DNA of 63,878 nucleotides, filler included, from Perkinsus chesapeaki ATCC PRA-425 (lineage: Eukaryota > Protista > Perkinsozoa), in NCBI GenBank assembly GCA_013115145.1. It is 8 parts of 8 records of this genome, joined end to end, with 100 filler letters (N's around TTAATTAATTAA, not from the genome) between each part and the next. Parts side by side here need not be neighbours in the genome. Positions count along the whole stretch, not along the records: positions 54,911 to 59,064 come from JAAPAO010001310.1; 7 more parts are not named here. One strand, 5' to 3'. Under the pieces are notes generated by a model. The model saw nothing but the letters and a program-made list of their open reading frames with translations. It was not told the DNA's origin and did no database searches. A program made the translations under genes and the position numbers. Shown piece by piece: positions 205-59,164 of this stretch; positions within the stretch are counted from its first letter, which is position 1, and every line of letters starts with the position of its first letter.

Positions 205-3200
205 TCATTTACTTATCATGTTACAGAAGTGAATAATATCCACTACCCGTTTCTTAGAGACTACTAGCTGTGCCAGCGTACCATCAGTATTCACCCAAGT
301 CCGCCTCCACTTTGCCCTAGCTGTTGCCATACACCTTAGGAGACAATGCACACAATTATCTAACTGTAGACAATCTTTACACAATAGGGTGTGATGACGG
401 GGTCGGTAGTGGTATGAGTTTAAGGCCTCTGAGTGCCCGCTCAGAATTCTACACAGACTCATACTATCAGTTCTGTGTATCACAGTTTCCGTAAGGCAGC
501 GCCTTTGGTGATGGCTTCCAAAAACCCTTCTCAGCTCTTCTGGAAGTCTTTCAATTCTTCCACATAAGTCTTCTTCCATTTTAATATTAAGAATCTTCTT
601 TGTAGCAGAGCTTCCACAGGGCAGAGAAATAATCGTTTCCAATTGACGAGCTTCATTTGCCAAGCAATCTACCATTTTATTGCCTTGACAAGATGAGTGC
701 CCAGCCACCCACTTATAATGACATACCACATCTCGCTCTTTTAAGATCTTGTCAAGACTTCTCACTTTCTTTGGGAGATAAGATGTACTATCAGATTTCA
801 ATAACAGTAAACCGGCTCTACTGTCGGAGAAAATGGATACCTCACCATTATGTATATTACCACTAGTAACAGCCCAATTTAAAAACATTATTATACCATA
901 TAACTCTGCCTGCATTATAGAAGCGGTAGCATGCACACGACTGCCTCTACTACTGCAGAAATTATCTGGGCCACACGCATAAAAGGCAGCACCAAATGAT
1001 ATCACTTCTTTACCAGGGCCTCTTTCCATAGAGCCATCAGTGTAGACCTTCCAGCCTGTCATAGTGCTCGCCTCGTTAGTTAAACTCTCCTCTTTACTAT
1101 CTGGAATACAAATTCTATCAGTGAACTCCTTATCTTCGAAAGGATATCTAGATAGAATATCACCATCATATGAAGTGCCAAAACCATTATCACTGAGTAG
1201 AGTTTCCCATCTCGACTTCTTTCCTTTGGCACGGCGTCCTACATAATTAAGGAGGGAGCCTTTGTGATAATGCGCAATAATAGCCTTGCTTATCAGAATC
1301 TGGCTAAGGGGAGGTCTGCCTGATAGGCTATAGATATAGTTCACCGGGGTCGATCTTCTCAATTTAAAGGCCATCCTCATAAACGCATTTCCAATTCTGT
1401 CTAGATAATCCCTGACATAGCTACTAGCCAAGGCACTTCCATAGATTTCTATTCCATAACACAATCTCGGGACAAACACTTTGTCGAAGATCTCCAAACA
1501 TCTATAAGGGGTCAAACCAATAGATTTCTTCACATACCGAGCCGTACCGTGCATAATCTGCTGCGCCAAGAGAGCCCTTTCCTTGATATGAGGGAAGAAG
1601 TTTAGTCTCGCGGTTATACACATACCCAATACTTTAAGCTGAGATACCATACCAGTCATACCGAGCGAGTTCAGTTTCATATCATTAGTCAGCATCTTGC
1701 ACTTAGATCGTTCCAAGTGTAAATCCGCCTTTTCACAGGCATTCCTGATAATCCTATATATCTTCTCAATTGTCGACCTCATAACCTCTGGTTCTTGGTG
1801 CTTTTTCCAACTTAATAAGAGATAGGCATCATCCGCATATATAACCCATCTAACTTACGGAAAGAGTGCCTCTAACTCAGTCACCACTTCATCATATATA
1901 CCATCAGTACCAATTATAAATAAGATGGGCGAGAGACCTCCTCCTTGAGGGCAGCCACGATTGGGATTGCCTTCTCTATCACAGGTCTGACCAGCATAGC
2001 TTACCCTAGCGCCTCTTTCTTTCAACCATCTACTGATCCAGCGAAGAAGGTAAGGTTCCTTGACACTCGACCTTAAAGCTGTCAAAATGCTCTCGTGGGA
2101 GATTTCCCCAAAAGCATTTGAGAAGTCAGTACTAAGAACAACCCATTTCCGTTCTGAATTGATCCACTCACAAATCGAGCTAATAACATTTAGAGTTGAT
2201 CTACCTCTTATAAAGCCGTATTGAACCCCTTTGTCATAAAAACGTTTAGAGACACAGTTTAGACGTTCTATAACAAGGAATTCACAGACCTTACAAAAGA
2301 CACTAGTAAGAGAAATAGGACGGACCGAGTCGGTCCGACCGACTTAATATTTTTCGGGTCCTTGCCGATCTTATTTAAGAATACAACTTGAGAATATCTC
2401 CAAGCAGGAGGAATCCAGCCTGTAGTAAACGAATAATTTATAATAGTCAGGACTGCATCTAAAATGGGATCTGGCAAGGACGCAAAAAAGCGTAGGCGAA
2501 CGCCGTCAATTCCTGGAGCTTTATCATAAGAACTATGACGCCTTTTCAAGATGGCACGAAGGTCGTCTAAGGAAAAGCTAACGAAGTCTACATCAAAAGT
2601 CTCGTTATTCGAGCTACCATCATCTGATATAAAGAACTTATCGGTGTCCAAAGGTATGGGGCTGACATAATGATCGGCCAAACGATTCAAAGATTCTGTC
2701 GGATCTCTGTCTCCTTCGAACAAGCGAGCCGGTACCGGTTGGCCTTTTTTAATTCTTCTATACAATATATTATCAGTTTCTTGAGCAACTTCAGAAATGA
2801 ACTTATTAAAGGCATACTTCTTCTTTTCCACTATCTTGTCTCTATAGGAGTTTCTTGCAAGCTTGTAGTCAGCAAGGCGTCCTTGTCTCAGAAATCTCTT
2901 TGTAGTCGCCCTTAACTGTCTTAATTCAGTGTCCCACCATTTAATAGATCCATTATATCTAATGTCCACTTTCTTTTCTACAGTAGCTTGAATAAAGGCT
3001 CGTTGCATCAGTCCAATAAGATCACCATATCTTGCGGTAGCTTCTGCATGATCCTTTATAGGGTTGGTCTTGATCTCATTTTTCTGGTCGAGCAAAAAAC
3101 TTGTATACTTGAGCCAATCACAGCGACCATAAGAATAACCAGAGAGACTATTTCCAGTGTCTCTTGAATGTAGATATGCATTATTATCAATTGAGACTTC

Positions 3201-3822
3201 AAATAAGATCGGATAGTGGTCTCCAATACCATTGTCAGGAAGTACTCGCCAGTTTTGACAGCTAACCGCTCCTCCCGAAAAGGTTACATCGATACAAGCC
3301 TTGCCTCCATTCCTGTTACTATTAGCAAAGGTTGGGTTGAAGAAAGTAGGAGAGTCTCCAACATTTTCACATATCATACCTCTTGATATTAGCTGCTCAG
3401 TAAGATAATCGCCACGTAAGAGTTGGTCAGGGGAAGCTGTCAGGCCAGTATTATCCCATAAGGGGCTCGAAGCATTCGAGTCACCTCCTAGAATTACTGC
3501 ATCTCCTTTTACCTCATCTAGAAGATCGAGGAAGGCAAAGTCTTCCTCCCCCGTAACAGTGGGTGAGATATAAAAGGAGGCAATTACCAGGTTTTTATAC
3601 AAAATCATAGTAAGATTCTTGCAAGAGGCCAGAGAGAAGACACAAGCATAACTAATATTGGTATTCACCAAAATAGCACAACGGCTCTACAAACATAAAC
3701 TTGGGGGGTTCAGATATAAGAATGACATCTACCAGTACATTTTGTTCTTGTAGAGAGCCAACGAAAGATAATAACACGTTATTAGAGTTCCTTGCATTAC
3801 ACTGTAAGAAACTTACAGACAT
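205..3822 (-). pseudogene. LINE ORF2 (endonuclease/reverse transcriptase/RNase H) with three lesions
   Basis: ATG at 3822 overlaps the ORF1 end; frameshift near 3690, 14-bp insertion at 2329-2342, in-frame TAA at 1855-1857 just before YADD; remaining motifs intact. Confidence 0.88.
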
Positions 3823-54910: not shown

Positions 54911-54983
54911 CACACTACATTTGTTGCCTTTCATACCGTTTCTCACCCAATCGAATTAAATTAGTACTATTACATTGTGGTTG
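54911..54983. repeat. 73-bp direct repeat, copy 1 (at contig edge)
   Basis: Identical to 56771-56843. Confidence 0.95.
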
Positions 54984-55483
54984 ATTAGTGAAGGTTGTGA
55001 CTTCACGAAAAGGCTAATCTGTTCGAGGTCAGTTGGATTAAAGATGATGGGCGAGTGATAGTACAGCTGGCGAGATGAATCAGGCAACACAGTGCGCGAG
55101 AGAGGAGGCGTAGAGATGAGTGAGTGCGCGTTAGCGAAATGAACTTCAAGAGTATAGGTCTCATGGGTGCACGCAACCAAAGCTAACCGAACGAAGGAAA
55201 GTGCGCAGCTGACTACGAGTTCTCAGTGAGAGCTTCTCACCGACTCAACGCCAAGCTAGCTAGGATTCGGTGCCGCGTAAAATGAAGAAGCCGGGCGCCG
55301 ATACCGGAATCTCTTGCATGTTAAGCGTTCTAGCCAGCCTCCGTAACTAGTCCCTGTTAGACCAGCGTGCACCGCTTATTTGCTGACTGGTGAGCATTTT
55401 CATTGCAGCCCCATACCCCTGAACAATGTTGAAAGCAAGGTTCGATTGTAAACAACATACCTAGGCAGGTATTCGGATGTGCT

Positions 55484-55557
55484 GGTCGTTTAGCTCAGTC
55501 GGTTAGAGCATCGTGCTAATAACGCGAGGGTCGCAGGTTCGAGCCCTGCATCGACCA
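55484..55557 (+). tRNA. tRNA-Ile(AAT)
   Basis: GGTCGTT-TAGCTCAGTCGGTTAGAGC-A-TCGTG-CTAATAA-CGCGA-GGGTC-GCAGG-TTCGAGC-CCTGC-ATCGACC-A. Confidence 0.9.
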
Positions 55558-55962
55558 TCGTTTTGCTGAGTGATCTGCTCTTTCAGGCCCGCTTGAAACC
55601 CGAGTGCAAACTTGAATGCAAACGAGAGTAAATCACAAACTGTGGCCAAGTAGTCGTGTGAGGCTCCAATAGAGAGTCTGGCTAAATACCACTGAACAAT
55701 GTTGAGGAAACACTAACGTGCGGATCACTGGGGCATTCATGAGTCACAACCAAGCAGCAATAAGAACGAGTCGGCCAACATTGGACAGGGGGCATCGGGG
55801 TTGTTCTATGTTTGGTCCATTCTTTTCCCGGACCAGGCTCGATTGTCGGCCACCAAGTAAGTGATCGTATGTCCTTTTTCTACGATTTACTCTGAAATAT
55901 GCCCCGCGTGCTTGAGGACAAACTAACTTCATGGACTACAAAGAAGGAAGTAACTTATAGCA

Positions 55963-56034
55963 TCCGCGGTAGTATAGAGGTTAGTATTCCTGCCTGTCAC
56001 GCAGGAGACCCGAGTTCAATTCTCGGCCGTGGAA
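55963..56034 (+). tRNA. tRNA-Asp(GTC)
   Basis: TCCGCGG/CCGTGGA acceptor, CCTGC-CTGTCAC-GCAGG anticodon arm, CCGAG-TTCAATT-CTCGG T-arm; discriminator A rather than the usual G. Confidence 0.88.
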
Positions 56035-56149
56035 TTTACGTTTCGCTTGAGAACGTATCAGACCCGCGCAACATTACGAATTGTAATGGACCATCAGGAT
56101 ATGCCAACTTGCCGGCTGACGAACACTCTTTTTCGGTTCGCATTTCTCG

Positions 56150-56215
56150 TTCTGTCTCCGGGATTCGAACGTTGACCTTCACTGCGAGAGACTGCAATTC
56201 AAACCAATGACACTA
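56150..56215 (-). pseudogene. Degenerate tRNA-like sequence (possibly Glu CTC)
   Basis: TAGTGTCATTGG...CTCTCGC...GTTCGAATCCCGG; stems largely unpaired. Confidence 0.35.
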
Positions 56216-56294
56216 TTATCACCTCAGTTATTGAGGTACTGCAAAGGAGTTCTGGTGGCTGCGAGCTGCAACTGTAGAGTTGCTTTACATACAT

Positions 56295-56377
56295 AAAGGT
56301 CTTTGCTCCTGAGTGCCAAGCAGATTCCGAGTGCAAGCGCACCATGTATATTTACCTTGAGCCAGAGAGGCTACGGT
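56295..56377 (-). ncRNA. Spliced-leader RNA gene 2 (variant exon)
   Basis: Minus strand ACCGTAGCCTCTCTGGCTCAAG then GTAAATAT donor; 58 nt to the first T-run, the same as gene 1; shared upstream boxes. Confidence 0.82.
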
Positions 56378-56387
56378 GGCAGATAAT

Positions 56388-56438
56388 GGTCGATGTTGAA
56401 GCGCGCTCAGTAGCATTAAATTCTCGCGCGCACCGAAA
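56388..56438 (-). promoter_or_regulatory. Upstream elements of SL RNA gene 2
   Basis: TTTTCGGTGCGCGC, AGAATTTAATGCTAC (56424-56410), TCAACATCGACC (56399-56388). Confidence 0.75.
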
Positions 56439-56770
56439 AACTCATTGCCATACCAGATTTCCCACGACTACTTCTCGAACAAAGTGGTGACAGCCCATCC
56501 GTTTCCAGACGTTGAATCACCGTCATGATTCCACATTCACAGTGAATTGGAATGCAGAAAAGGTGGGGGCATAGACAGGACGGCAACTGGTGATTCAATC
56601 AAGTATTATAAAGAATAATTAATATATACTATATTTTAGTATAAAATGCTATCACCAGTCACCGTTGTACGACGGAAGGAAACGTCATCGAAGAGGTTGC
56701 GAAGGTGAATGTAGCTGAATGAAGGCATACTGATGCGGTGATTCACTCTCAGCTCGCGACTTCAACATGT

Positions 56771-56843
56771 CACACTACATTTGTTGCCTTTCATACCGTT
56801 TCTCACCCAATCGAATTAAATTAGTACTATTACATTGTGGTTG
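56771..56843. repeat. 73-bp direct repeat, copy 2
   Basis: Identical to 54911-54983; truncates the integrase ORF. Confidence 0.95.
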
Positions 56844-58700
56844 TGATCGCTTCTTGAAGACTTCCCGGCGAGCTTAGTAAGATACGCATTAATGATACAT
56901 GAAGAGTCTACCGGTTCACAAAGCGGAAGCAAGACAGTGAATCGGGTATAAGCACAGGTTACAGTGAGCACCGCAGACCGATGGAGATTGAACTCAGCCT
57001 CAAGCTCTCGAACCAACATAAATATATCAGATCCCACAGCAAACCATGGCAAAGGAACTTGTAGACATTGTCCTGATATTGACACAGATATGTCAGAAGC
57101 ATTCTTCGCTGAGCTTTGGCATATGGCACATTGTCGAACGAAAAGTTTACAGTCCTTACGTACAGATGGCCACCAATAAGCTTGCTGTATCATTCCACAT
57201 AGGAGTTGAGCTGATCCATGAATCGAAAATTCATGAACTCAGCCTCAAGATCTCGACCCAACATAAATATATCAGAGCCCACAGCAAACCATGGCAAAGG
57301 AACCATGGCATCTCCTTGAACGTCTCGCCATGACTTGCACAAATTGGCATTATCATTAAAGCCAATAATCTTATCGCATCGCAAAGCGTCTAGATTATCA
57401 GACACTCACATTTGAGCTCCTCGTTCACGTAGAGCTCCGAAGCTGCTCTCTCCTTTTCCAGGCACCACCACAAAGTCGAACTGGCAGAATCCTATACACT
57501 TGACTATTCTACGCCGGCAGCAAGTCGTCGCCCGGACCAATCTTATAGATTCTTTCCTCTAGTTAAGGGAACAGAGAGGGACAGGCAGTTCAGGCATTAA
57601 CAATGACCACCCTAAAAGAACACCGTACCACGATTCTACATAAAAATCCGCCGCCACAGTCGTGGCAGCACAATGTCCTTAATTAAGAGGTGTTAACCCT
57701 TATGTATAACTCTGGGCAAGGTCGTGCCAGGCATTAGAAATATCATCCCAGTGGCGTCATCGGCATACTCGTCATTCTGCAACTTCTTGACCATACCATT
57801 TAAGCATCGAAGGGCCTCTCGTTCCTTGACCTCCAACTAATGGCTAAACTACTGAAAGTCGCCAGCCCACGGAGAAACCTTAACTTATAAGACTTGCATT
57901 TCTTCTCAAATAGTTCCCATTCCGCTTCAAAAGCAGCAGAAGAAAGATCTCGGCGTTGTGTCGCTGAAGTAAGCAAAGGAACACCACTCTGGCAGCCAGC
58001 AATAAGATAACCACAGAAAACCAATTTATCAGTTGCTCTTTGAGCCTTAGAGTCTCTACATTCGAAACAATACTTCTGCACTTCATCAATCAGTATAGTC
58101 AAAGCCAAGTTTACAGTTTCTTCATCTGGCCCTGCCACAATGACATCATCTTGTAAACTACGCAGGCTGCAGTCTACATTGGTTCTTTCAAGGCAGATCG
58201 CGCATCTACCAGTATTGTTTCTACTGCCCTACCAAATAAGATTGAGGATTGCTAATATCCCATAGGTAACCGTTTCCAGGCGAACAATACTTTTTCATTG
58301 CCCTCGTCATCAAGTACTCTAGTGGCCATATGCTTTTGCATTTCGGAGCTGATATATACTCCATGAAAAGCATCTCGCAAGTCAATCCTCCCAAAATAAG
58401 CACCGTGGCTGAGAGGCAGTAAACGAATCAAGTCGTTGACACCGTATTAAGATAGCCTACTTTCCTCATCTTGCTTCGAAGTGGGCGCACTAGTACCAAT
58501 CTAATTGACGAACCGAAGATCTAGAGTCACACTAAAATTTCCCAACAGTTTTTCCGCGTTTTTCTCCTAAGATATCGGGTAGAACCTTCCAAGAATCGGC
58601 ACTTTTCTTAGCTACTAACACTACTTCATTAACCGTCCAAGCTTCTCCTGCATGTAGTCGGGTGACTTTATCTTTCTTAATCTCTCCATAAGGCAGAGTA
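56844..58700 (-). mobile_element. Degenerate Ty3/Gypsy pol (RT-RNase H-integrase N-terminus)
   Basis: GYLWDISN, LQDDVIVAG, KLVFCGYLI (RT); FDFVVVPG (RNase H end); YWWPSVRKDCKLFVRQCAICQ and WFAVGSDIF (integrase); many stops and frameshifts. Confidence 0.8.
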
Positions 58701-59164
58701 ACTTATGGTCTTCTATTCGTAGAGGTAGCAGCCACACGGGCCGTGGCCACGGCCTCTCTCCTTTCAATGCTTTTTTAAGAGCCCCCCTTACTAGCACTGA
58801 AGCTGGCTATGATACTGGGAAGTTCCAACTCTCTTTTGGTTGGTCACCCGGGAATCTCATTAGCAATGTGCAGCTTATCCCAGTTAGCCATGTTTGCTTA
58901 TCGTCTTTGCGCTTTCGTTCTCCCTCACATTGTCAACAGGTGTTAGTTGTTTTCCTCCTCCTCCCCCATCAAATGTCCCAGCCCCTATCCTCCCGCTCCA
59001 ACGACCCCCCGACTGAAGCCGAGATGCGCGCCGCTGAGAAAGCCGTTACAGCTGCCGCCATGAANNNNNNNNNNNNNNNNNNNNNNNNNNNNNNNNNNNN
59101 NNNNNNNNTTAATTAATTAANNNNNNNNNNNNNNNNNNNNNNNNNNNNNNNNNNNNNNNNNNNN

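Follow-up and report, generated by a model that had tools for sequence, protein, structure and literature searches.

A locus in the genome of Perkinsus chesapeaki ATCC PRA-425 (GCA_013115145.1) raises the question of whether Perkinsus carries a third kind of spliced leader (SL) RNA gene or whether the locus is a decayed copy of a known one. It lies in a window of 63,878 nucleotides, in which eight genomic parts are joined by filler, within the part taken from JAAPAO010001310.1 (positions 54911-59064). Only two leaders are on record for SL trans-splicing in Perkinsus, and the centre of the exon is the only candidate Sm-binding site. In P. marinus, PmaSLRNA-S has a 21-nt exon, ACCGTAGCCATCTGGCTCAAG, with the centre ATC, and PmaSLRNA-L has a 22-nt exon, ACCGTAGCCATCTTGGCTCAAG, with the centre ATCT (Zhang et al. 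2011, PMC3101222). A third multi-copy leader altered at exactly the Sm-like site would be a natural test of the importance of this motif. Multiple SL types and many unvalidated variants are already documented in Perkinsozoa (PMC9399869), and the kind of gene is therefore known; the TCTC exon centre found here appears to be an unreported variant. The leader string was absent from full-text papers, where the one match was an unrelated human primer. The exact leader also gave zero matches in JGI metagenome contigs, GTDB genomes and IMG/VR; these collections are without Perkinsus genomes, and the absence therefore says little about other Perkinsus species.

The gene unit read in positions 54911-59064 is 83 nt long, lies on the minus strand and consists of a leader, a donor, an intron and a T-run. 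The 22-nt exon, ACCGTAGCC-TCTC-TGGCTCAAG, located at 56356-56377, was recovered both by reading the sequence and by a pattern search, and the complete leader is ACCGTAGCCTCTCTGGCTCAAG, running from 56377 to 56356. The donor GTAAATAT begins at 56355, immediately 3' of AAG (AAG/GTAAATAT), and the GGTA motif is present. The donor opens a 58-nt intron (56298-56355). It is followed by TTT at 56295-56297 (RNA positions 81-83) and then by A at 56294, and this T-run is the likely 3' end or terminator. The layout proposed by the sequence-only reading, namely a leader with a TCTC centre and a 9+9 nt match, a donor and a 58-nt intron, was thus confirmed on the minus strand. The upstream flank (56378-56480, minus strand), in which contig differences were recorded, is the presumed promoter region without a defined element; it showed weak similarity alone, to motifs located 5' of tRNA genes. 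The pattern CCGTAGCC-N5-GGCTCAAG matched once in the window and in 0 of 100 dinucleotide shuffles. Compared with the L-type leader of P. marinus, both 9-nt flanks are exact and 18 of 22 bases are equal, the central four being different. The TCTC centre can also be derived from the 21-nt S-type leader (…CC-A-TCTGG…) by replacement of A with TC. At the Sm-like site the exon reads CUCUCUGG, and the A at position 10 is lost, so that the Sm-like A-U-rich-GG motif (AUCUUGG or AUCUGG) is missing. The T-run of the gene is located at the right place but is only CT3A.

The intron was compared with those of P. marinus, which were rebuilt from the 3' RACE primers given in PMC3101222. The first approximately 17 intron bases were homologous in the alignment to the starts of both the S-type and L-type introns. 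The intron starts with GTAAATAT-ACATGGTGC in the window copy and with GTAAATA-CATGGTCC in the major paralogue described below, and the aligned start of both forms combined is GTAAATA(T)CA(T)GGTCC. The length to the T-run is 81-83 nt, compared with the published 80-83 nt for Perkinsus SL RNAs (PMC3101222). In P. marinus, the SL RNAs are 80-83 nt long with the 3' end inside the T tract, and the SL RNA of P. chesapeaki is approximately 83 nt long (PMC3101222). With E values up to 10, Rfam detected only the two tRNAs described below, both in the piece as a whole and when two sub-regions were scanned, and nothing matched the SL region. Judged from its sequence, the feature is a genuine homologue of SL RNA genes and not an exon relic, since the start of its intron can be aligned with those of both P. 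marinus types and it retains the exon hairpin and the paired donor.

The surroundings of the gene and its number of copies were examined with four sets of DNA contigs aligned to 55400-56770 at 80% likeness. Two of the sets, X1 and X2, come from independent DNA studies of this organism, and X1 contained 62% of the words. Positions 54911-54983 are repeated exactly at 56771-56843, with a spacing of 1860, and an X1 contig links 56770 to 55400 via 489 letters, which equals the length of 54911-55399. The exact repeat and the 489-letter junction indicate that the SL gene and two tRNA genes form a tandem repeat unit of 1860 bp (54911-56770). The tRNA genes are tRNA-Ile (AAT) at 55483-55559 on the plus strand (64.7 bits) and tRNA-Asp (GTC) at 55963-56034 on the plus strand (61.8 bits), the latter being convergent with the SL gene. 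The spacer at 55560-55962 had no Rfam match. A decayed pol fragment of an LTR-retrotransposon (56844-59064, minus strand) interrupts the next unit at 56844; it lies 470 bp from the SL gene and carries stops and frameshifts. It contains Integrase_H2C2 (38.5 bits; integrase zinc domain at 57238-57100), a weak RVT_1 match (16.5 bits), the RT box LQDD near 58150 and a 70-nt internal duplication at 56989/57234. The sole protein relatives of the pol fragment were from P. chesapeaki (78-85% identity) and Perkinsus olseni (67%), and its relatives in DNA comparisons were one contig of P. chesapeaki at 78% identity and one of P. olseni at 67-74%. No SL gene was found in the P. olseni and P. chesapeaki contigs carrying these retroelement relatives.

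The presence of this element bears on the idea that the exon is a relic of a retroposed trans-spliced mRNA or a fragment mobilised by the adjacent retrotransposon. The genomes of Perkinsus and of dinoflagellates commonly contain SL relics (PMC3101222), and a retroelement does lie nearby. However, relics are without an intron, whereas this locus has a GT donor, approximately 17 nt of homologous intron and a T-run at the canonical distance. Moreover, the leader begins with A, whereas most relics begin with T and stand in tandem (PMC3101222), and the SL gene is situated inside the tandem unit and outside the retroelement. A relic origin, already contradicted by the intron homology, is therefore considered very unlikely.

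Several other elements were observed in the tandem unit. A tRNA-like relic occupies 56160-56236, 59 nt downstream of the SL gene and, like it, on the minus strand; its B box (GTTCGAATCC) is nearly perfect and an A-box-like sequence (TAGTGTCATTGG) is present, but acceptor pairing is absent. Neither ARAGORN nor Rfam called it, and relaxed ARAGORN settings gave junk calls alone. The contig depth at this relic was 10-18 times that of the unique parts of the unit, and it may be a tRNA-derived repeat. A 20-nt motif, ATACC[C/A]CTGAACAATGTTGA, occurs twice on the plus strand, at 55413-55432 and 55686-55705 (19 of 20 bases identical). One copy is 51 nt 5' of tRNA-Ile, and the other precedes a stretch of approximately 150 nt with a T5 end (55875-55879); the two copies may reflect a small duplication or a promoter element common to both downstream sequences. 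The stretch itself (55727-55879) was dropped as a small RNA candidate on the basis of a fold z of −0.5 and no Rfam match. Perfect 9-nt inverted arms, ACTGGTGAT and ATCACCAGT, were found at 56587-56658, 210-280 nt upstream of the SL start, and flank 54 nt of nearly pure A+T. The bin containing them had the top contig depth among the non-tRNA parts of 55400-56770, about 29,000 in X1, which indicates that the element is highly repeated in the genome. A 14-nt inverted match between 55648-55661 and 56460-56473 was not used because it is at chance level (about three are expected in 4 kb), and a bacterial promoter and terminator scan was set aside as irrelevant to a eukaryotic source. In addition, an X1 contig with a depth of about 200 joins 56038 to 56349, connecting the end of tRNA-Asp to the SL donor and leader. 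This joint omits or replaces 310 nt and points to another arrangement or to a truncated SL copy elsewhere.

The number of genomic copies had been set beforehand as a test of the sequence-only reading. The depth of X1 was approximately 670-710 over the exact-match parts of the unit, and the sole X1 contig across 56228-56365 had a depth of 3344, approximately five times the value of about 680 for the exact-match flanks. These depths are relative values from which an absolute copy number cannot be derived. This major contig differs from the window copy at 56310, 56322, 56332 and 56340 and at several flank positions, those in the upstream flank being 56379, 56382, 56398, 56403 and 56423. It also lacks 2 nt at 56347-8 that are extra in the window copy. 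The X1 majority letters at 56310, 56322 and 56340 recurred in X2, together with another intron variant. Among the best 40 of 73 difference rows, no difference was found inside the leader (56356-56377) in X1 or X2, and the leader was spanned by contigs of both studies at depths of approximately 1170-3540. Thus, at least three intron variants share the TCTC leader in X1 and X2. Because the leader occurs in a deeper, well-folded paralogue and in further variants, it is not single-copy; it was multi-copy in two DNA studies. The TCTC leader is a family trait and not a one-off decay, and the window copy is a minor member, with approximately one-fifth of the contig depth of the major form.

The same contigs bear on the possibility that the gene is canonical, with ATCT, and that faulty sequencing or assembly produced its TCTC centre. 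The window letters at 56310, 56322 and 56340 are absent from the X1 contigs, and the assembly and the contigs do differ. On the other hand, contigs of both studies show no difference from the window across the leader among the best 40 of 73 difference rows, and four adjacent base changes are atypical of errors. Contigs are also known to drop minor variants, and the loss of rare variants probably explains the absence of the window copy's own letters. An error in the leader is thus hardly credible.

The divergence of the window copy from the major paralogue was approximately 6.5% and was uniform in the upstream flank, the intron and the downstream flank. Zero changes in 22 leader bases against this background have a chance probability (P) of about 0.25. 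Since this outcome is expected by chance approximately one time in four, it does not establish constraint on the leader. The CT3A tract was the same in the window copy and the major paralogue. The sequence-only reading had taken the TTTA terminator as a sign of recent decay of this copy; its shortness was borne out, but because CTTTA also occurs in the major paralogue, the weak terminator is a feature of the family and not of decay of the window copy alone.

The folds of the two forms were then predicted, the major form having been rebuilt from the X1 difference table and not read as sequence. The predicted exon hairpin of the TCTC leader had a free energy of −8.7 kcal/mol, compared with −8.5 for the L-type, −8.2 for the S-type and −8.5 for the dinoflagellate leader. 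The fold follows the architecture published for the exon: the pairing of ACC with GGU spans the donor, and a UCUCU loop, closed by AGCC/GGCU, stands where the L-type of P. marinus has (A)UCU(U). An exon domain with a paired donor GU and with the central motif in the terminal loop was predicted in both copies. The major paralogue, whose intron includes the GGTCCGCTTGCTCTCGG region, folded at −29.2 kcal/mol with a z of −3.2, and only 0.4% of 1000 dinucleotide shuffles were as stable. In its predicted fold, an 8-nt linker separates the exon hairpin from a long stem in the intron, and this stem closes directly before UUU. The window copy folded at −19.9 kcal/mol with a z of +0.1, its intron stem-loop being degraded and most of the stem lost. 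The four window substitutions are all at sites paired in the major fold; three of these sites become mismatches (G·G, A·A and A·G) in the window copy, and one becomes a U·G wobble. In one X2 variant, a C-G pair of the stem is changed to U-G, and the pair is kept. In simulations, four random intron substitutions cost equal or more stability in 13% of cases, and the loss of the fold is therefore not unusual. The data fit a structured major form and an impaired minor copy, as far as predicted folds can tell, without proving selection.

These results have to be weighed against the view that the whole TCTC family consists of SL RNA pseudogenes, that is, duplicates in which a slip in the TC-rich run at the centre was followed by drift and which are silent, or transcribed yet never used in trans-splicing. 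Known Perkinsozoa genes have T tracts of CT4-7 (PMC9399869), and the T3 tract of the family counts against function in this comparison, as does the loss of the A of AUCUUGG. The uniform divergence, from which the leader is not significantly spared, and the dead retroelement that adjoins the locus point in the same direction. There are also precedents: variant SL genes without evidence of splicing number 25 in M. nigrum and 5 in P. sinerae (PMC9399869), and P. marinus has more than 100 SL-like loci without a product (PMC3101222). However, the deepest form is the major paralogue with a stable two-domain fold, which neutral decay would not maintain, and the X2 variant preserves its stem pair. The leader, the donor and the intron start are intact, and the U-tract of the S-type leader, which does function, is poorer still; the proven S-type motif, AUCUGG, is at least as poor as that of the TCTC leader. 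Furthermore, Alacid et al. doubt that a classical Sm site exists in Perkinsozoa (PMC9399869). A family made up entirely of pseudogenes therefore keeps an appreciable probability, and it is not the reading we prefer.

On balance, we lean towards the explanation that the gene in the window is a genuine paralogue in a multi-copy family of SL RNA genes with a TCTC exon, in which the major form probably works and the window copy is minor or decaying. Because its architecture is intact and its predicted fold is thermodynamically unusual, the major form is probably functional as a small RNA. The P. marinus genes suggest, by analogy, that the major gene would be transcribed into an RNA of approximately 81 nt ending in a U-run. 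Such an RNA would have three parts, namely the exon hairpin, a short single-stranded linker and an intron stem-loop closing before the terminal U-run, and its 22-nt exon would be donated to pre-mRNAs at AAG/GU. The major form is thus a plausible source of a third type of leader. Transcription of the window copy, if it occurs, would yield an 83-nt RNA with a weak 3' domain, and from its predicted fold this copy is most likely weakly functional or decaying. The alternatives of the sequence-only reading, a distinct SL class or a decayed copy, therefore came out mixed: the TCTC centre stands as a family trait and decay of the window copy is likely, but a lesion confined to one gene is not.

That the TCTC leader represents a working third SL class in a Perkinsus species, carried by a subset of mRNAs or used at a particular life stage, is a tentative and rather unlikely proposal. 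If it were true, the donor would be the structured high-copy paralogue, a parallel to the two SL types of Parvilucifera would exist, and the Sm-like motif of the exon could lose its A and yet function. The leader would also offer a test of whether Perkinsus sorts its mRNAs by leader type, like Parvilucifera. A leader in use would also matter in practice, since SL-primed cDNA and PCR methods for these parasites of shellfish would overlook or mis-prime the transcripts that carry it. A dead family would add another example of turnover among SL genes and be of little note.

Among known SL systems, the dinoflagellate leader DinoSL (DCCGTAGCCATTTTGGCTCAAG) resembles the TCTC gene in its exon flanks and T-run terminator, but differs in having a U4 centre, a much shorter intron and an RNA of 56 nt or less. 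A search of metagenomes with a generic perkinsid-donor pattern gave only four genes, all of the ATTTT type. These genes (L001-L004), located on marine metagenome contigs, are dinoflagellate- or syndinian-type SL RNA genes with an ATTTT leader; they share the donor GTAAATATC with the S-type of Perkinsus, and their short introns end in T-runs. The contigs of L002 and L004 are near-identical and come from different samples. The donor GTAAATAT of the TCTC gene is the same in all four.

In the Perkinsozoa, Parvilucifera sinerae has SL-type-1, SL-type-2 and unvalidated variant SL genes, and such variants were also reported in Maranthos nigrum (Alacid et al. 2022, PMC9399869). They offer a precedent in this group for more than one SL exon type, each encoded by its own multi-copy genes and distinguished by the Sm-like region at the centre. 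In contrast, their exons are 25-28 nt long and A-rich, and their RNAs are 60-68 nt long. In addition, the two Parvilucifera types have been proven on mRNAs, where each marks its own set of transcripts, whereas the TCTC leader is known from genes alone.

The closest comparison is with P. marinus. The first nine and last nine exon bases are identical, GGTA occurs in both, and the donor GTAAATAT is that of the S-type. The intron start CA-GGTCC is homologous, and the predicted RNA would likewise be 80-83 nt long with its end in a T tract. Both systems have two predicted stem-loops with a paired donor and the central motif in a loop, and in both the genes are multi-copy and partly in tandem. The TCTC gene differs in its UCUC centre without an A at position 10, in the remaining intron and in having only three T in its tract, and it is known here from DNA alone. 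The P. marinus SL genes are linked to U2/U4 snRNA genes, whereas the TCTC gene is linked to tRNA-Ile and tRNA-Asp. An S-type exon probe gave a weaker band of approximately 83 nt in P. chesapeaki, for which the authors suggested an exon base change, and P. marinus intron probes gave no signal in this species (PMC3101222). A weak exon band together with silent intron probes would be the behaviour expected of a TCTC exon with a different intron.
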